Origin: Prasinococcaceae sp. CCMP 1430
Taxonomy: Eukaryota > Plantae > Prasinodermophyta
Length of the DNA: 7,360 bases
NCBI GenBank assembly: GCA_013416795.1
Contig: RQSC01000510.1
Location: 1-7,360, forward strand
Direction: 5' to 3'
In this document: positions 1 through 7,360 of the stretch, piece by piece
Layout of the letters: every line of letters starts with the position of its first letter
Position numbering within the stretch: the stretch's first letter is position 1
Notes under the pieces: model-generated
Told to the model about the DNA's origin: nothing
Database searches by the model: none
What the model saw: only the letters and a program-made list of their open reading frames with translations
Made by a program: the position numbers and the translations under genes

Positions 1-423
1 GCCGACCGCCGGGCGCGCGAACTCCGCCGGCGGCGCGGCGAGCGGCGCGCGCGTGACCGCGTCGGCGAGGATGACCTCGAGAACGCCCTCCCTGCCCGGC
101 GCCACGCGCCCGTTGCGCCGCGCCACCTCCTGCGGCGTCATGGCGTCGAGCGCGCGCCGCCGGTAGAGTATCGTGCCGATCACCTGCTCGATCTCGGCGT
201 CGACGCGCCGCAGGTGCACCTGCGCGGGCACCACGTAGGCTAGGTGCTTGGCGATCGAGTAGGCGCCCGCCAGGCTCAGCCACGTGAGCATGAGGGCGCC
301 GAAGGCGTTGCCCAGCGCGCTGGCGCCCGCGGGCGTGTCGAGCGACGCCAGCACGCGCATCGCGAGCGGCAGCGACGACACCTCGGCGGCGCTCGCGGCG
401 CCCGTGACGGCCGCCGAGGGCGC
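1..423 (-). CDS. Hypothetical membrane protein, internal fragment (open at both ends; 141 codons)
   Basis: Stop-free minus frame from 423 to 1 with almost all codons ending in G/C. It translates as APSAAVTGAASAAEVSSLPLAMRVLASLDTPAGASALGNAFGALMLTWLSLAGAYSIAKHLAYVVPAQVHLRRVDAEIEQVIGTILYRRRALDAMTPQEVARRNGRVAPGREGVLEVILADAVTRAPL..., with one hydrophobic segment (AFGALMLTWLSLAGAYSIA). It is absent from the ORF track, probably because no stop lies in the window. Family not recognised. Confidence 0.55.
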
Positions 424-425
424 CG

Positions 426-426
426 N
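426..426. other. Single-n assembly junction
   Basis: Isolated n at 426. The high-GC3 reading frame on the left ends here; the right side is the 3' flank of the golgin gene. Confidence 0.8.
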
Positions 427-510
427 ACACACGCGCTCGCGTCTCGCGTCACATCACACGGATGGCGTCGTGCATCCAGGTGGTCACCAGCTCCTGCGCG
501 TTTTTCTTAC

Positions 511-1635
511 TCATGACGCGCCGAACATGGAAGACAGCCACGCCCCTGCGCTGTCTGCTGCGGCTGCCGCGCCCGCGAGCGGCACGGCACCCGCCGCAGC
601 CGTCTCATATGCGGTGCGAATGCGCTTCACCTCCTCCGGCGACATCTTGAGCAAGGTCGCCACGACAGGCAGCAGTGCCTCGAATTCGCCCGTCTCCAAC
701 AGCTTGACGATCGTGCATTTCAGGTACTCCATGTCGGTGACCTCCTTGCCCATGCGCTCGAGCTCGGCGGCGCGGCGCAGCGCACGGATCTCGTCCTTGA
801 GCACGCTGCACTGCAGCGCGTTGCGCTCGGCGTCCAACTCGTACTCGCGCATCTCCGCAATCGCCTCCATCGCCTCGCGTCGCGCGCCGGCGAGCTCCTC
901 GTCACGTGTCGACTGCACAGCGGCGAGTTGCAGCAGCTTCGCCTCCATGTCGCTGTTAGCACGCTGCAGGGCGCCGCCGTTCGCAGCCGTCGTGTCGACT
1001 GCCGCCCCCCCCACGCCAACGCCGGCGGCGCGCGGCTGAAGCCGGATGTTCGCAGCCTCCTGCAGCAGCCGACTCACTTCGGCGTCCTTTGCCTCGAGCA
1101 TGCTGGCGGACAGCTCACGGAAGTGCGCGAACTCCTCCTTCAGCGCATTGTATTCGCTACGCAAGGTGACAAGCGAGCCGGCGTCCGCCGCGGCGGATGC
1201 GGTGCTCACGCTGGGATTGCTTCGCGCACTTTCGTGGCCGCGTCTGGGCGATCCCAAGAGCGAGCTTGGGCCCTCGGGCGCTTGGTTTGGGCCCGTCGAT
1301 GAGCCATCCGCTTGCGCCAGCGCTCCTTCTGCCTCGGCAAGGCGCCCCTCGAGCTCGGCACATCTGGCGCGAAGGTCAGCCTCTACACGCTGTTCCGTCT
1401 TCTCCTTCGCCTTCAGCCGGGATTGCACGCCCTGGAGCTTCGCCTCCATCGCCTCGAGCTCGGCTTCGGCGTCGGCGGCGGCCGCCTCTGAGGACGTCAC
1501 GAGAGCGTCAACACGAGCTGTGGCCGCATCGAGCTCTGCCTGCAGTCTGTGCTCAGCCTCTCGCGCATCGGAGAGATCACGTTCGAGCTGGGCACGCGCA
1601 TCACCGCCTTGCGCCTCCTCGAGCTCCTCGTCCTC
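511..1635 (-). CDS. GRIP-domain golgin (trans-Golgi coiled-coil tether, plant AtGRIP-like), 5'-truncated
   Basis: C-terminal TDMEYLKCTIVKLLETGEFEALLPVVATLLKMSPEEVKRIRTAY matches the GRIP domain pattern (YLK..l.k.LETGE.EALLPVV..LL..SPEE). It is preceded by long E/A/L/R-rich heptad coiled coil, and the stop TGA is at 513-511. The frame extends upstream of the ORF-track GTG start at 1500 as EDEELEEAQGGDARAQLERDLSDAREAEHRLQAELDAATARVDAL to ~1635, with no ATG before an in-frame stop at 1734-1732, so the 5' end is missing. Confidence 0.9.
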   Translation of the reverse strand, partial: EDEELEEAQGGDARAQLERDLSDAREAEHRLQAELDAATARVDALVTSSEAAAADAEAELEAMEAKLQGVQSRLKAKEKTEQRVEADLRARCAELEGRLAEAEGALAQADGSSTGPNQAPEGPSSLLGSPRRGHESARSNPSVSTASAAADAGSLVTLRSEYNALKEEFAHFRELSASMLEAKDAEVSRLLQEAANIRLQPRAAGVGVGGAAVDTTAANGGALQRANSDMEAKLLQLAAVQSTRDEELAGARREAMEAIAEMREYELDAERNALQCSVLKDEIRALRRAAELERMGKEVTDMEYLKCTIVKLLETGEFEALLPVVATLLKMSPEEVKRIRTAYETAAAGAVPLAGAAAAADSAGAWLSSMFGAS

Positions 1636-1647
1636 CCCCGCACACAG

Positions 1648-2365
1648 GGCCCCCTCCGGTGGCGGGCGCGGCCATCGACGCCGCGCTGCTCGTGGCGCAC
1701 GGAAAGCTCTCGCCGCTGGAGCTCGACACGGTCATGGTGAGGACAATTGTTTTTTTTGTGTGTGTTTGGGTGTGTGTGTGTGGGAGCGTGTGTGGGTGTG
1801 AAAAGCGCTCGCCTCGCCTCGGCGCGCGCGCGGCCCGCGCGCTCGGGGTGTCCCGCTGACGCGCCGGCGGCCGCGCGCGCGCGCGCAGGACGACCTGCAC
1901 GAGGGCAAGGCCGACGTGCTCGTCTCCACCACGATCGTGGAGAACGGCCTGGACATCAACAGCGTCAACACCATCCTCGTGGAGGACGCGCAGCAGTTCG
2001 GCCTCGCGCAGCTGCACCAGCTGAGGGGCCGCGTCGGCCGCGGCGCCGAGCAGGCGTACGCGCACTTCCTCATCGGCAACGCCACGTGGCAGCGCCCCAC
2101 CACGCTCGAGATGCTCGCCGCGGAGGGCGGCGCGGGGGGGCTGCAGCACGACCGCCTGGCCAAGCTCAAGGAGGAGCAGTCGCTCGGGGGTGGCTTCGCC
2201 ATCGCCAAGTTCGACGCGCAGCTGCGCGGCTACGGCGAGCTCTTCGGCATGCGGCAGTCGGGCTTCGACGCGGGCAGCGTGGGCGAGGAGATGATGCTCG
2301 AGCTCATCCACGACGCGATGGCGCGCGCGCAGTTCGGGCGGCGCGCGCGGGGCGGTGCGGCCTGA
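1648..2365 (+). CDS. mfd: Mfd/TRCF-like (RecG/Mfd family) SF2 DNA translocase, C-terminal part; exons 1648-1736 and 1889-2365
   Basis: Spliced translation: ...LLVAHGKLSPLELDTVM|DDLHEGKADVLVSTTIVENGLDINSVNTILVEDAQQFGLAQLHQLRGRVGRGAEQAYAHFL...RLAKLKEEQSLGGGFAIAKFDAQLRGYGELFGMRQSG. This contains helicase motifs IV-VI (AHG, STTIVENGLDI, FGLAQLHQLRGRVGR) and the TRG motif of RecG/Mfd. AHG, QAYA, LGGGF and the following VG..M.LE helix favour Mfd over RecG. Upstream acceptor cacacAG at 1646-1647; TGA at 2363-2365. Confidence 0.85.
1737..1888 (+). other. Spliceosomal intron (152 nt, phase 0) in the Mfd-like gene
   Basis: ATG|GTGAGG donor, GCTGACGC branch site (A at 1859) and gcgcAG|GAC acceptor. Removal joins the helicase motifs in frame. 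Contains a T/GT-rich tract. Confidence 0.9.
1749..1800 (+). repeat. Imperfect (GT)n/T-rich microsatellite in intron
   Basis: T-run followed by gtgtgtgtttgggtgtgtgtgtgtgggagcgtgtgtgggtgtg, read directly. Confidence 0.85.
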
Positions 2366-2437
2366 CAGCAGCATTTTAGATCAAAAATTTTCAGTGTTTA
2401 CCGTAAAAGTGACTTTCAGGCATCAAGGCAGGGTACA

Positions 2438-4924
2438 CTACAAACGCTGCATATTCCCCCTCCCGCGCGCGAGGGCGCGCTCGCGCGCGCCAGTGATGAG
2501 GAAGAAGCACAGGGTGCCCGCGGCCACCTTCAGCGTGCGCAGCAAGAGGGACATACGGATATCGATGTGTGCATATCGGAGGCTGCGAGAGAAAAGGAGA
2601 ATCGCGCAGAACGCCAGCGCTATGATGAAGTTCTCCTCGGCGCTGGACGCCGCCTCGAACACATCGCTGTAGCTCTCGTACGGCTTGGTCACGCGGTCCG
2701 CCCATTCCTGTATTTCTCCGATCCAACTGTCATGGATGAGCTCACTCACGTTGCTGCTCTCCGAGTCGTTCAGGGACTGCTCGCAGAACTCGATAGGCGT
2801 CAGCACCTCAGAGAAGTTGAGGCCGTTCTGCGTCTGATTGTCCCTCAAAGAAATGAGGGTGTCGTAGACGCTGTCGCCTATTGGCGCCGAGAGGCGGTAG
2901 TTCATAAGGAGCGCGTTGATGTAGTTGGGCCAGCTGACGTTCTTCCACCCCTCGGGCAAAGGCATGGCCGGCTGGGTTGCGTTCCCGCAGATGCGGTCGA
3001 TGTCCTCGCAGCAGTTGCCGTAGATGTAGCAGAGCGCCGCGTCACAGATGCAGCCGCCAGACGCATTCCCCACACCTCCCGTGCTCGTGAAGCCACACCA
3101 CGTGACATTCTCAAGCAGCTCGAAGTGCTCGACGCCGGATGGTAGCACTTCAACGGCACCCTGCACGCAGCTACGATTGGCGGGCGTCAAAGTGTGGTCG
3201 AAGTCCGGCGTGAGCGGCGACGCGGTCGTGTTCGCACGCGGGTAAAGCCACGGCGTGCCATCCCAATAATAGGCCTCCTCGCCATTGAGTGCCGACGCCA
3301 GGAATGAATCGCGCAGAAAGGATCGTTGCGCGTCTGGTGCGTAGTTGGAAAATACCAGGTCGCCAAGCTGCTCGTTGCTGCAAACTTGGAAGCAGTTTCC
3401 GTAGGCCGTTGCGCAACAAAAGGGCGTGAGGACCACCTCAAAGGTCTCGCACGTGGCAAAGGTACTGTTTCCGCAGCAATATTCGGTGATGTTGTCCCAT
3501 GTCTCTGCGCCCATGGGCACGTCCGCATCCAAGTCGAGGCAGTCCTCGCACGAGGCGGACAGCGCCTTGTGGCGGTCGACGTAGACTCCGTACAGGATGA
3601 TCGTCGCGATCATCACGCCTAGCGTCAGGAGGTCGAACCAAAACCACTTGCGTGAGAAAGCCCTTCCAAAGGAGACTACGGTGCGCCACCAGAGCGACTG
3701 CACGCTCCCACGCAGGCCGCGCTCGATGACGCAGAGCCGGCCGAAGATAGGACCAAACAAGAAGAACAGTGTGAAGAAGCAGAAGACGACCTGAAAAACG
3801 CCCAGGGCAACGCCCTGCGCGCCCGGGTAGAGGTTCACTGGCAAAAACGTGTAGCTAACGGCGTCCGTGCTGCCGTCAAAGGTGACAAGCACCCACAGTG
3901 AGTCGGTGCTACCACCAGCAGCGCGAGTCTCATCGACGCTCGCCATCTCGGAGTACGTGGCGCCCTCATTCGAGATAGATCCATCCACCCTGGAGCGCTC
4001 GCTCTGCGGCACCTCGCGCAGCAGCATGTGCCACCTCAGACCGATCCGCATCGGGCACTCGTCCAGCCCGCCGGAGCTGGTGCGGCTTACGGACGTGGCG
4101 GTGGCGCAGCGCGTGTCATTGGCGAGCCCTTGTGTCGCAAAGCCCATCACTGCCGAGTCGATCGGTGCGCAAAGGTCGTGCATGTTGTGGTACGACGTTG
4201 ACCGCCTTCGGGCGACCTCGCATGCGTCGGGAACCTCCCCAGAGGCGCAGAGGAGCTCGATCTGCGCCTGCACGCGATTGCTACCTCCTATCGACCAACC
4301 ATAGCTGGCGCCGAAGTCCCAATTGAGCTCGGAGGCTGTGGCACGGTCAACTGCGTCCCAGTCGGAGAGGGGGCGAGAATTTGCGTTGTCGCCGCCGCTC
4401 GTCGTGTTCACCGTGCCGGTGAGGTCATCGAGGTGCGGTGTAAAGTCGAAGCCCAGGCTCTGGTGGAATCGTATGCCGAATGAGATATCTGTGTCGCCAA
4501 GCTCATTCCGCGGCTCGCCATCAGTGAGGGACATGGTGAGCCAGCTGCTGTACAAGAGGAAGCTGTCGTGCAGCCGAAAATCGTCGAAGGAGCACCCGAC
4601 GCAGCGCGTCGGCCGGTGGAAGACGCGTGACACCTGAGTGGACCATTGCCACGCCTTCTGCGTCTCGCTGGTGATGCGTTCCGTGTCGACCAGCGCGTTC
4701 CCTACCTCCCACAGCGCCACTGGCGGACACAGCCCCGGCGTGGTGCGCCCGAGGCCGCGCGGGCCGTAGCCATTAGTGGTGAGCACACCGTTGTCGGAGC
4801 CCTTTGCAAATAGATTGTCAAGGTCGGCCGCGATGGACGCGCGCTCGCCGTACGAGCGTAGCGTCGGCAAGAGCTGCAGCATCACGATGAAGCACGCCAG
4901 AAAGAAGATGTACAGCAGCGGCTC
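2438..4924 (-). CDS. Polycystin-2/TRPP-like cation channel, partial (S1, TOP loop, S2, S3, enlarged S3-S4 loop, S4, start of S5); pore and S6 absent
   Basis: One uninterrupted frame. S1 EPLLYIFFLACFIVMLQLL resembles PKD2 S1 (ELvtYllFL). A ~350-aa S1-S2 loop ends in VLVTFDGSTDAVSYTFLPVNLY, like the end of the TOP domain. S2 VFQVVFCFFTLFFLF; pre-S3/S3 AFSRKWFWFDLLTLGVMIATIILYGVY; S4 and linker ILLFSRSLRYAHIDIRMSLLLRTLKVAAGTLCFFLIT, comparable to PKD2 [30 protein letters not shown]. The first 45 aa of the listed 873-aa ORF lie across the n at 4925 and do not belong to this gene. The last ~17 codons (2438-2490) are probably non-coding. Confidence 0.75.
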   Translation of the reverse strand, partial: EPLLYIFFLACFIVMLQLLPTLRSYGERASIAADLDNLFAKGSDNGVLTTNGYGPRGLGRTTPGLCPPVALWEVGNALVDTERITSETQKAWQWSTQVSRVFHRPTRCVGCSFDDFRLHDSFLLYSSWLTMSLTDGEPRNELGDTDISFGIRFHQSLGFDFTPHLDDLTGTVNTTSGGDNANSRPLSDWDAVDRATASELNWDFGASYGWSIGGSNRVQAQIELLCASGEVPDACEVARRRSTSYHNMHDLCAPIDSAVMGFATQGLANDTRCATATSVSRTSSGGLDECPMRIGLRWHMLLREVPQSERSRVDGSISNEGATYSEMASVDETRAAGGSTDSLWVLVTFDGSTDAVSYTFLPVNLYPGAQGVALGVFQVVFCFFTLFFLFGPIFGRLCVIERGLRGSVQSLWWRTVVSFGRAFSRKWFWFDLLTLGVMIATIILYGVYVDRHKALSASCEDCLDLDADVPMGAETWDNITEYCCGNSTFATCETFEVVLTPFCCATAYGNCFQVCSNEQLGDLVFSNYAPDAQRSFLRDSFLASALNGEEAYYWDGTPWLYPRANTTASPLTPDFDHTLTPANRSCVQGAVEVLPSGVEHFELLENVTWCGFTSTGGVGNASGGCICDAALCYIYGNCCEDIDRICGNATQPAMPLPEGWKNVSWPNYINALLMNYRLSAPIGDSVYDTLISLRDNQTQNGLNFSEVLTPIEFCEQSLNDSESSNVSELIHDSWIGEIQEWADRVTKPYESYSDVFEAASSAEENFIIALAFCAILLFSRSLRYAHIDIRMSLLLRTLKVAAGTLCFFLITGARERALARGRGNMQRL
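2987..3052 (-). other. Somatomedin-B-like cysteine motif within the channel ORF
   Basis: CICDAALCYIYGNCCEDIDRIC has spacing C-x-C-x4-C-x5-CC-x-D-x4-C, versus vitronectin SMB CQCDELCSYYQSCCTDYTAEC (C-x-C-x3-C-x5-CC-x-D-x4-C). Confidence 0.65.
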
Positions 4925-4925
4925 N
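4925..4925. other. Single-n assembly junction
   Basis: Isolated n separating the minus-strand channel (moderate GC) from the plus-strand TPR gene (very high GC). Both genes lose their 5' ends here. Confidence 0.85.
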
Positions 4926-6042
4926 CGCGCGGCGTCGCAGGCGCTCGCGGCGGCGGCGGCGGCGGCGCCGGACGACCCCGTGCTGTGGTCGGAGCTGGGC
5001 AACGCGCACCGCGCGATGGGCGACGCGACCACCGCCATCGCGTGCTTCGAGGCGGCCATCCGGCTGCAGCCGCACCCGGACTACTACCTCAACCTCGGTG
5101 CGGAGCGCGGGGCGCCGAGCGCGAGCGCGCGGAGCATGGAGCGCGATCGCGCGAGCGGGGGAGACAGAGAGACGGGGAGAGAATATGCAGGGGGGCGGCG
5201 TGGACTGCGACCTGGCAGCTGACGCGCCCCATTCCACCCTCAACATTCCCCTCCCGACGCAACCCTCTGCGCACACACAAACGCACACAACAACGACACC
5301 CACGACACCAACGCACACCCACCACACCCCTTCCTTCCCCTTGCCCCACCACCGCCTCACACAACAACAACAACAACATAATAGGCTCGACGCACGCGGC
5401 CATCGACGAGCTGGAGGAGGCCACCCGGCTGTACGCGATGGGCCTGCAGCTCAACCCGCGGCACGCGCTGCTGCAGTTCGCCGCCGGCGCGGCGCACGCC
5501 GCCGCGGGGCGCCCCGACGAGGCCTCGCGCGCCTTCGAGGCCGTGCTGCGCACGCAGCCCGACTTCGTGGCCGCGCGGCAGTACCTGGACGTGCTGCGCG
5601 CCGAGAACCCGCTGTGGTGGCACTCGAGCGGCTACCTCGCGGCGATGCTCACCGCGGCGGCCGCCGCGCTGGCCGCCGCGCAGCAGGTGCGCCCTTCCCC
5701 TCCCTCCTTTGTTGCCCGATGCCACCCCCCTTCTCGCCTGACCGCTCGCGTCCGCTGACGCCCGCGCCCTCTCCCTTTGCCCTTGGCTCCGACGCCGCAC
5801 CCACCCACCCAAACCCACACAAACCCACCCCACCCCAAACCCACCCCAAACCCACCGCCCATGTTGTGCCCCTCCGCGCGCAGGCGATCAGCTGGCTGCT
5901 CCTGCGGGGGACGTCGGAGCTCGAGTGGGACATCAGCGAGGGCGGCGGCGGCAACGGCGGCACCTCCGACGCGGGAGGCGGCGAAGGCGGAGGCGGGGGC
6001 GGCGGGCGCGGCGGAGGGGGCGGGAGGCGCGGCGGAGCGCCC
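4926..6042 (+). CDS. Tetratricopeptide-repeat (TPR) protein, partial; exons 4926-5097, 5385-5686, 5884-6042+
   Basis: Spliced translation: ...APDDPVLWSELGNAHRAMGDATTAIACFEAAIRLQPHPDYYLNLG|STHAAIDELEEATRLYAMGLQLNPRHALLQFAAGAAHAAAGRPDEASRAFEAVLRTQPDFVAARQYLDVLRAENPLWWHSSGYLAAMLTAAAAALAAAQQ|AISWLLLRGTSELEWDISEGGGG.... At least three ~34-aa TPR units show W..LG..., A...F..A....P spacing, followed by a hydrophobic stretch and a Gly-rich tail running into the gap. Confidence 0.85.
5098..5384 (+). other. Spliceosomal intron (287 nt, phase 1) in the TPR gene
   Basis: G|GTGCGG donor, GCTGACGC branch site (A at 5222) and aatAG|GC acceptor. Splicing restores the TPR LG motif in frame. Confidence 0.9.
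5362..5376 (+). repeat. (CAA)5 microsatellite just before the acceptor
   Basis: caacaacaacaacaa read directly; it produces the spurious NNNNN in the ORF track. Confidence 0.8.
5687..5883 (+). other. Spliceosomal intron (197 nt, phase 0) in the TPR gene
   Basis: CAG|GTGCGC donor, GCTGACGC branch site (A at 5758), C/A-rich tract and gcgcAG|GCG acceptor. The frame is preserved. Confidence 0.85.
5941..6042 (+). repeat. Imperfect (GGC/GGA)n low-complexity tract encoding a Gly-rich segment
   Basis: ggcggcggcggcaacggcggc...ggcggaggcgggggcggcgggcgcggcggagggggcggg directly abuts the N gap. Confidence 0.8.
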
Positions 6043-6490
6043 NNNNNNNNNNNNNNNNNNNNNNNNNNNNNNNNNNNNNNNNNNNNNNNNNNNNNNNNNN
6101 NNNNNNNNNNNNNNNNNNNNNNNNNNNNNNNNNNNNNNNNNNNNNNNNNNNNNNNNNNNNNNNNNNNNNNNNNNNNNNNNNNNNNNNNNNNNNNNNNNNN
6201 NNNNNNNNNNNNNNNNNNNNNNNNNNNNNNNNNNNNNNNNNNNNNNNNNNNNNNNNNNNNNNNNNNNNNNNNNNNNNNNNNNNNNNNNNNNNNNNNNNNN
6301 NNNNNNNNNNNNNNNNNNNNNNNNNNNNNNNNNNNNNNNNNNNNNNNNNNNNNNNNNNNNNNNNNNNNNNNNNNNNNNNNNNNNNNNNNNNNNNNNNNNN
6401 NNNNNNNNNNNNNNNNNNNNNNNNNNNNNNNNNNNNNNNNNNNNNNNNNNNNNNNNNNNNNNNNNNNNNNNNNNNNNNNNNNNNNNNNNN
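6043..6490. other. Scaffold gap (448 N)
   Basis: Run of n from 6043 to 6490. Confidence 1.
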
Positions 6491-6786
6491 CGGTGATGGC
6501 GCTGCCGCTGATGGTGCGGGCGATGCGGCTGTCGATCGAGGCGGTCGACCGGCGGTTGGAGCAGGCCGCGGCGACGCTGGGTGCCGGGCGCTGGCGGGTG
6601 TTCACCAGCGTGACCCTGCCGCTCAGCCTGCCGGGCGTGCTGGCCGGCACGGTATTGGGCTTTGCGCGGGCGCTGGGCGAGTTCGGCGCGACGATCACCT
6701 TCGTCTCCAACATCCCCGGCGAGACGCAGACCTTGCCTTCCGCGATCTACACCTTAACTCAGATCCCCGGCGGCGACGCCGGCGCC
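6491..6786 (+). CDS. modB: Molybdate ABC transporter permease ModB, bacterial-type internal fragment
   Basis: VMALPLMVRAMRLSIEAVDRRLEQAAATLGAGRWRVFTSVTLPLSLPGVLAGTVLGFARALGEFGATITFVSNIPGETQTLPSAIYTLTQIPGGDA contains the ABC-permease EAA loop (from 6559) and the ModB signature FARALGEFGATITFVSNIPGETQTLP. No introns. The last ModB transmembrane helix is missing. Confidence 0.9.
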
Positions 6787-7073
6787 GACGAGGAGGCGGA
6801 CGGCGACGCCCGGGAGGGCGGCAACTCTCCCGGGCAGGTCGCGCTCAAGGTGCGCAGACGAGTGACGCGCGGCGGCCTGGACGACGGAGAGGTGTCCAAA
6901 GAGACGGAGAGCGCCCCCACCCCACCCCCCAAAACACACACACACACACACAGCACACACGCGCACGAGCGCGACGAGGAGCGAGCGCGCGTTCGCCTTC
7001 GCGCTGACGCCCCATCCACACCAACACCACCACCCCACACCACCTCACACCCCACACCACCACCACCACCACC

Positions 7074-7112
<39 letters not shown>

Positions 7113-7360
7113 CACCCACACCAAAAAAACACAAACAAGGTGCTGAGCTCGCCGCTCTTCTACGTCACCGCGGGCTTCGCCTTCGCGTCGCGGCTGGTGG
7201 ACGCCGCGGGCGACGCGTTCGCGGGCGCGGCGGTCGTGGCGCTGGCGGCGGCGCCGATCGTCCTGCTGACGGCCGTCGCGGAGACGGGCGCCGGCGACGG
7301 CCTCGCCGAGCGAGCGGCGCGCGACAGGGCGGCGTACGAGAGCGAGAGGCCCGCCTTCGA
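6787..7360 (+). CDS. Hypothetical eukaryotic membrane protein, partial; exons ~6787-6849 and 7140-7360+
   Basis: Spliced translation DEEADGDAREGGNSPGQVALK|VLSSPLFYVTAGFAFASRLVDAAGDAFAGAAVVALAAAPIVLLTAVAETGAGDGLAERAARDRAAYESERPAF has two hydrophobic segments and nearly all codons ending in G/C. The left boundary is approximate. Family not recognised. Confidence 0.65.
6934..6951 (+). repeat. (AC)9 microsatellite, intronic
   Basis: Read directly. Confidence 0.9.
7056..7110 (+). repeat. Compound (ACC)6 + (AC)18 microsatellite, intronic
   Basis: acc x6 at 7056-7073, then ac x18 at 7075-7110. Confidence 0.9.

Follow-up and report, generated by a model that had tools for sequence, protein, structure and literature searches.

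A polycystin/mucolipin-group channel of the alga Prasinoderma with a large, conserved insert between S3 and S4

Introduction

In six-helix channels, outer sensory domains are found in the loop between the first two membrane helices (S1-S2), as in the polycystins and the mucolipins, or in the vicinity of the pore. The S3-S4 link follows the movements of the sensor helices and is for this reason short as a rule. A channel gene of a prasinodermophyte alga raises the question whether a TRP-type voltage-sensor-like module can be driven from outside, and a conserved S3-S4 domain of about 300 residues, as described here, is a natural experiment for this question. The gene is located on the minus strand of contig RQSC01000510.1 of Prasinococcaceae sp. 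CCMP 1430 (assembly GCA_013416795.1), of which positions 1 to 7,360 were analyzed; this whole stretch of 7,360 nucleotides is called the window below. A first-pass annotation, which had been made from the DNA sequence alone, had labeled the gene product as TRPP/polycystin-like and had drawn attention to an insert of about 310 residues between S3 and S4. The insert is a new target for structural biology and a lineage-specific invention in an early-branching green lineage.

The window carries the middle part of a channel gene of Prasinoderma coloniale

A tblastn comparison of P0001, a near-identical environmental variant, with the window yielded a match of 99.1% identity and no other match, which places the channel gene at positions 4924->2486 of the minus strand (813 codons). 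The fragment corresponds to residues 29-841 of P0001. It is also identical to residues 139-951 of P0005 over its full length (2486..4924, minus strand; 813/813 residues, 0 mismatches), and the source names of P0005 are Prasinoderma coloniale PRCOL_00005641-RA and MMETSP Transcript_10289. By this identity, the window carries the middle part of the P. coloniale gene PRCOL_00005641. The S3-S4 loop, for which a confirmation as exonic had been recommended, is contained in a transcript-derived sequence, namely MMETSP Transcript_10289. The first 138 and the last 285 residues of P0005 are located outside of the window, which contains S1-S4 and half of S5 of the channel; the pore and S6 are missing.

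Assignment to the polycystin/mucolipin group and membrane topology

P0001 matches the Pfam family PKD_channel (PF08016) with 42.4 bits (E 7.2e-11, cut-off 22.4). The match comprises residues 780-922, which are aligned to profile positions 83-223 of 225 and contain S4-S6, and the family is matched by all ten aligned members (10/10). Such a match on the helices that flank the insert had been proposed as a test of the channel assignment, and the full-length protein passes it over S4-S6. The window's own translation has no PKD_channel match in the Pfam scan, because the pore half (S5-S6) is missing, and its sole Pfam match is a weak one to Somatomedin_B (E 0.1). When the family profile was compared with solved structures, TRPML3 was the best match (6aye, E 1.2e-4), with an alignment that begins at S4 of TRPML3 and continues with S5, the pore, and S6, and PKD2L1 was found with an E-value of 0.29. 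The nearest Atlas clusters bearing a Pfam family were in ten of ten cases PKD_channel families of protists and animals, with scores of 0.80-0.84 that represent leads only. Judged from these sequence comparisons, the gene codes for a subunit of a predicted cation channel with six helices, which falls into the polycystin/mucolipin group (Pfam PKD_channel). Of the earlier label, the membership in PKD_channel was thus corroborated by the Pfam score, and the choice of TRPP over TRPML was not, as neither branch is clearly preferred.

Hydropathy analysis of the open reading frame (ORF) 5059..2438, which contains the channel gene fragment, revealed helices at ORF residues 48-66, 417-435, 476-494, 811-829, and 838-856. 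Exactly three helices precede S4, and S5 begins in the window; S5, the pore, and S6 are present in P0001, and the layout is that of six helices with a pore loop. As the PKD_channel match covers S4-S6, the helix after the insert is S4, and the helix before it is S3. The latter holds the invariant Asp of a WFWFD motif, as seen in the columns of the family alignment. The charge is +3 for the N-terminus and +6 for the S2-S3 linker (7 K/R versus 1 D/E), in contrast to -17 for the S1-S2 loop and -34 for the S3-S4 insert. The basic N-terminus and S2-S3 linker together with the acidic loops indicate, by the positive-inside rule, that both loops are non-cytosolic, in agreement with the extracellular or luminal location that had been assumed for the insert. 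The view that both loops are large was also borne out, with 349 residues for S1-S2 and 313 residues for S3-S4. A hydropathy scan revealed no stretch with the strength of a membrane helix within the insert or the S1-S2 loop. The S1-S2 loop alone does not match Polycystin_dom (PF20519) or MCLN_ECD (PF21381), and when the S2-S3 region, the S1-S2 loop, and the insert were compared one by one with Pfam at E <= 10, nothing meaningful was retrieved. A duplication of the S1-S2 domain as the origin of the insert was rejected (hhalign probability 0.06%).

The S3-S4 insert

The insert runs from RHKALSAS... to ...AASSAE in one stop-free frame, preceded by ..IILYGVYVD and followed by ENFIIALAF... The unbroken frame of about 310 residues that had been described between S3 and S4 has a length of 313 residues. 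The insert as such had been recognized correctly, and only its limits had to be corrected from 2635-3575 to 2636-3574, one base inside at each end. Recounting also reproduced the 18 Cys and the 12 N-x-S/T sequons that had been listed. The number of sequons is far higher than in shuffles of the insert's own residues, which contain 3.1 +/- 1.6 of them; in 2000 shuffles, the number of 12 was not reached once. The insert is probably folded and may contain about nine disulfides and carry N-glycans. On the outer or luminal face, it would be the neighbor of the S1-S2 domain. The positions of all features are compiled in Table 1.

Table 1. Features of the channel gene and of the other genes in the window.
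Feature	Position	Strand	Remarks
S1, first membrane helix LLYIFFLACFIVMLQLLPT	4862..4918	-	hydropathy peak 2.29; low-confidence model aligns region to PKD2 S1, from PKD2 residue 214
S1-S2 loop	3812..4858	-	349 residues, 8 conserved Cys, 2 sequons; at the site of the TOP/polycystin domain
S2, basic cytosolic S2-S3 linker, S3	3575..3811	-	hydropathy peaks 2.5 and 1.93
S3-S4 insert	2636..3574	-	313 residues, 18 Cys, 12 sequons, net charge -34
Best-conserved part of the insert	2975..3109	-	invariant sequon NVT-WCG, then somatomedin-B-like knot C-x-C-D-x3-C-x3-GNCC-x-D-x4-C
S4 ENFIIALAFCAILLFSRSLRY	2573..2635	-	conserved R-x-x-R/K; PKD_channel match begins just before; aligns to TRPML3 S4 from residue 380
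S4-S5 linker and first half of S5 (..MSLLLRTLKVAAGTLCFFLITGA)	2486..2572	-	gene breaks off here in the window
Coiled-coil ORF, 329 residues, GRIP domain at end	514-1500	-	GRIP E 2e-10
RecG/Mfd-like helicase, C-terminal part	~1650-2365	+	Helicase_C E 5e-8
TPR-repeat protein, two pieces	4929-5100 and ~5400-5700	+	
Bacterial-type ABC transporter permease fragment	6493-6750	+	BPD_transp_1 E 1.3e-12; directly after N run 6043-6490

Conservation of the insert and its restriction to one channel family

A word search retrieved four clusters that cover 98% of the query (45% in the case of P0004, which is itself truncated), and both loops are present in all of them. The named members are all from Prasinoderma. 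They comprise the P. coloniale genes PRCOL_00005641, PRCOL_00005626, and PRCOL_00004199 and the UniRef members A0A7S3FDL7, A0A7R9TZJ8, and A0A7R9XYR2, also from Prasinoderma, which bear the automatic database name 'Polycystin cation channel PKD1/PKD2 domain-containing protein'. At least four subfamilies can be distinguished by their pairwise identities, which amount to 35-66% for the whole protein. The question whether the architecture is conserved can be answered positively, as the large insert has been kept in the paralogs, with a length of 277-324 residues in all members. Eleven Cys columns of the insert are invariant in all ten sequences, and the number of Cys per member is always even (18, 16, 12, 16, and 14). 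One sequon is invariant, the N of NVTWCG (N634 of P0001). The identity is 29-59% in the insert, 39-68% in the S1-S2 loop, and 60-84% in S4-S6. The best kept part of the insert is the segment from NVTWCG to the knot, which has an identity of 49-64% in distant paralogs, compared to 24-42% for the remainder. By this distribution, the insert is older than the split into at least four subfamilies. A comparison of the cultured-strain sequence in the window with P0001 showed that six of the seven residue differences are located within the insert, and the insert accounts for 38% of the fragment.

When the insert alone was compared with 1.84 billion representative proteins using HMMER, five matches were found at E <= 0.001, three of which are PKD_channel proteins of the present family. 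The other two, P0044 and P0045, were discarded as unrelated repeat proteins. An Atlas search with the insert returned nothing usable, a metagenome scan with the family alignment led to 81 pattern matches, none of which was confirmed, and a word search with the S4-S6 region retrieved the same family only, with no insert-free relatives. Across the databases that were searched, the insert is confined to these channels and is present in no other known protein.

In the literature, no account was found of a channel of this group with a large domain in S3-S4, and a term search of the P. coloniale genome paper (PMC7455551) showed that polycystins and ion channels are not mentioned. The earlier remark that no described channel with this layout was known to the annotator is in accordance with the absence of a paper on the layout among those found, and the proteins themselves have been deposited under an automatic polycystin name. 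The novelty is that of a variant of a known channel family, and the S3-S4 lengths were set against those of PKD2, PKD2L1, and the mucolipins, which represent a part of the family, and other clades may have unrelated inserts at this site.

Comparison with polycystins, mucolipins, and somatomedin-B domains

The S3-S4 linker extends from residue ~528 to 554 in PKD2 and from ~407 to 434 in PKD2L1 and thus comprises ~25-30 residues (PMC5864754). The short S3-S4 segment that had been cited as established for PKD2-type channels is therefore correct, with ~27 residues in both proteins. The linker contacts the polycystin (TOP) domain, and it has been proposed that it moves on gating (PMC5864754; PMC10192930). 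The Prasinoderma channel shares with PKD2/TRPP2 and PKD2L1 the PKD_channel match over S4-S6, the number of helices (six), a large and presumably non-cytosolic S1-S2 domain where the TOP domain is found, the Asp in S3, the basic residues in S4, and a helical C-terminal end. In addition, solved PKD2 chains are at the top of the weak structural lists. In contrast, its S3-S4 segment has a length of 313 residues, and it thus lacks the short linker, which is a typical trait of the family and not a formal criterion. Further differences from PKD2 and PKD2L1 are that neither Polycystin_dom nor an EF-hand is matched, that an IQ-like motif is present instead, and that the pore motif reads LLFDPFP.E.FP.

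The mucolipins (TRPML1-3) belong to the same Pfam family, one of them (TRPML3, 6aye) is closest in sequence over S4-S6 among the proteins with solved structures, and they have a large luminal S1-S2 domain. However, the Prasinoderma channels do not match MCLN_ECD. Mucolipins have only ~550-590 residues and a short S3-S4 link, whereas the Prasinoderma protein comprises 1126-1236 residues and has in addition a long tail and a second domain on the outer side. Dictyostelium PKD2 is also a family member of a unicellular eukaryote with an enlarged outer surface, but there the enlargement is in the S1-S2 (TM1-TM2) loop, whereas the Prasinoderma channels have a separate and unrelated S3-S4 domain. Chlamydomonas PKD2 presumably is another protist polycystin-type channel with an enlarged S1-S2 loop.

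The knot in the best-conserved part of the insert resembles the somatomedin-B (SMB) domains of vitronectin, ENPP, and EndoU in the core C-x-C-D...GNCC-x-D...C, which corresponds to profile positions 7-39 of 40. The Pfam family Somatomedin_B (PF01033) is matched by nine of the ten members at E <= 0.5 and at the same place, in all cases below the cut-off of 23.1 bits (best score 18.9 bits, E 0.0019; window copy 13.3 bits). Therefore, 'SMB-like' seems to be a fair description, and the scores stay short of membership in the family. The core matches both SMB domains of EndoU (9ftw) with an E-value of 0.11, at which an unrelated enzyme scores equally. In contrast to genuine SMB domains, which have a knot of eight Cys, only seven Cys are in register, and the similarity covers about 40 of the 313 residues of the insert.

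The cytosolic tail, which is outside of the window, contains an IQ-like motif (PF00612) in five of the ten members at E <= 0.5 (best 2.5e-4). The motif of P0039 reaches 21.0 bits and thus surpasses the cut-off of 20.3, and the other members are below. In P0001, the IQ-like motif is located at residues ~975-1000, and a terminal helix is predicted for residues 1087-1114. The combination of both suggests that the channel might be controlled by calmodulin and that the helix might serve coiled-coil/tetramer assembly.

What might the insert do?

The explanation that we favor as a whole, and which seems probable, is that the protein is a polycystin/mucolipin-type channel in which S3-S4 forms a second outer domain, and that binding to this domain or force on it would bias gating. 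The voltage-sensor-like half of the subunit bears two large domains on the predicted non-cytosolic side, S1-S2 with 349 residues and S3-S4 with 313 residues. From the insert, S4 would extend outward as a single long helix; residues 752-811 form a single helix from the insert into S4 in the structure model, which is of low confidence. Because the S3-S4 linker moves in polycystin gating, binding to the insert or force on it should bias S3/S4. Whatever the insert binds or feels could be passed on to S3/S4 and further to gating, and a protein of the wall or matrix, a ligand, or force would come into question as the input. A more far-reaching version regards the insert as an integral receptor domain whose direct action on S3/S4 gates the channel and which is possibly tied to SMB-rich proteins of the algal wall or matrix. 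This version is tentative, and we would not expect it to hold. If true, a voltage-sensor-like module would be coupled in a new way to an outer domain that binds a partner or bears force. If the insert were merely decorative or protective, it would be a curiosity of one genus.

Several observations weigh against the favored explanation. The copy in the window lacks the pore. The insert changes as fast as the tail, with an identity of 29-59% versus 60-84% in S4-S6. Only one sequon is invariant and the counts go down to 3-7 in relatives; a high number of glycans is thus not a feature of the family as a whole. Neither S1-S3 nor the S1-S2 loop is matched by Pfam when taken alone, and both were assigned by hydropathy, by position, and by a weak structural similarity (Z 7.3). 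This similarity stems from an AlphaFold2 model with a mean predicted local distance difference test (pLDDT) value of 40.7 for the whole protein; a model of the insert alone reached 38.6. Both values are too low for use, and a Foldseek search with the whole-protein model found nothing at E <= 0.001. Residues 20-480 of this low-confidence model can be aligned to residues 214-532 of PKD2 (S1, TOP, S2, S3), with 219 aligned residues and a root mean square deviation of 8.4 A. The Foldseek rows with Z >= 5 are nearly all polycystin and mucolipin chains; such Z values can stem from a common arrangement, and the PKD2 alignment was counted as weak. Structure prediction, which had been suggested for the loop, therefore resulted in a weakly PKD2-like model of the whole protein and did not yield a fold of the loop.

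Alternatively, a channel of the same architecture could reside in an internal compartment, vacuolar or lysosome-like as for the mucolipins, and the insert could be a luminal, glycan-covered shield or scaffold instead of a sensor. This alternative has to be taken seriously, although we regard it as unlikely. It would be in agreement with the fact that the best solved sequence relative is TRPML3 and not PKD2, and with the strong enrichment of sequons in the window ortholog. Sequon enrichment is usual on the luminal faces of lysosomal membrane proteins. In addition, the known cells of P. coloniale are devoid of flagella (PMC7455551), and thus a ciliary role, as known for polycystins, is not obvious. 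However, the gene set points to flagellate stages, and the genome paper argues that they probably exist (PMC7455551). A ciliary polycystin-like role is thus neither supported nor excluded. Further arguments against an internal shield are the missing MCLN_ECD match and the sequon load, which is not conserved in the relatives, as stated above. Moreover, with its SMB-like knot and its conserved framework of Cys, the insert resembles a binding module more than a shield.

Limits of the gene and integrity of the copy in the window

ORF 5059..2438 (873 codons) is a composite, and the channel gene occupies only 4924->2486. The part upstream of a single N at position 4925 is the antisense of the TPR gene on the plus strand. 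The final 16 codons past 2486 represent a read-through, which stops ~70 nt from the end of the RecG/Mfd-like helicase gene on the plus strand. The order past 2486 is 16 read-through codons, a GC-rich stretch, an AT-richer stretch of 60 nt, and the 3' end of the helicase gene.

The missing pore could also mean that the copy in the window is a truncated, non-functional gene fragment, from which a real rearrangement has removed the pore. That the window is devoid of the first 138 and the last 285 residues of P0005 would be in line with such a truncation, and so would the absence of an N as gap marker at 2486. However, the fragment is 100% identical to an annotated and transcribed full-length gene. 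Other public contigs, with sizes of up to 12.7 kb, contain S4 to the C-terminus within one ORF (P0006), and they carry the frame on past the S5 break with LLFMGYVFF.... Furthermore, the opposite end of the gene abuts the N at 4925, and the neighboring TPR gene beyond this N is likewise cut, exactly at the N, which argues for sequence that is missing from the assembly. A truncated gene is thus very improbable, and most likely sequence is absent from the assembly at both ends of the channel gene.

That the insert is an artefact, i.e., a retained intron or a mis-join that happens to be read in frame, might be suspected from its unusual position and from the lack of any Pfam match, but this reading is close to refuted and has hardly any probability left, as the insert is found in the transcriptome-derived sequences P0005, P0042, and P0025, as the frame has remained open in other subfamilies at an insert identity of 29-59% (35-66% for the whole protein in pairwise comparison) with invariant Cys, and as the tblastn match to P0001 passes unbroken across the insert.

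Other genes in the window

The genes next to the channel gene are listed in Table 1. The helicase gene has a clear GT-AG intron at 1738-1888, which contains (GT)n-like repeats, and no exons upstream of this part can be recognized within the window. The two pieces of the TPR gene are separated by a low-complexity, CA-rich stretch that is intron-like. The permease fragment could be part of an algal gene for a plastid-type transporter, or it could be a bacterial contamination that was joined across the gap. The ORF with the GRIP domain looks like it encodes a golgin-type Golgi-targeting protein.

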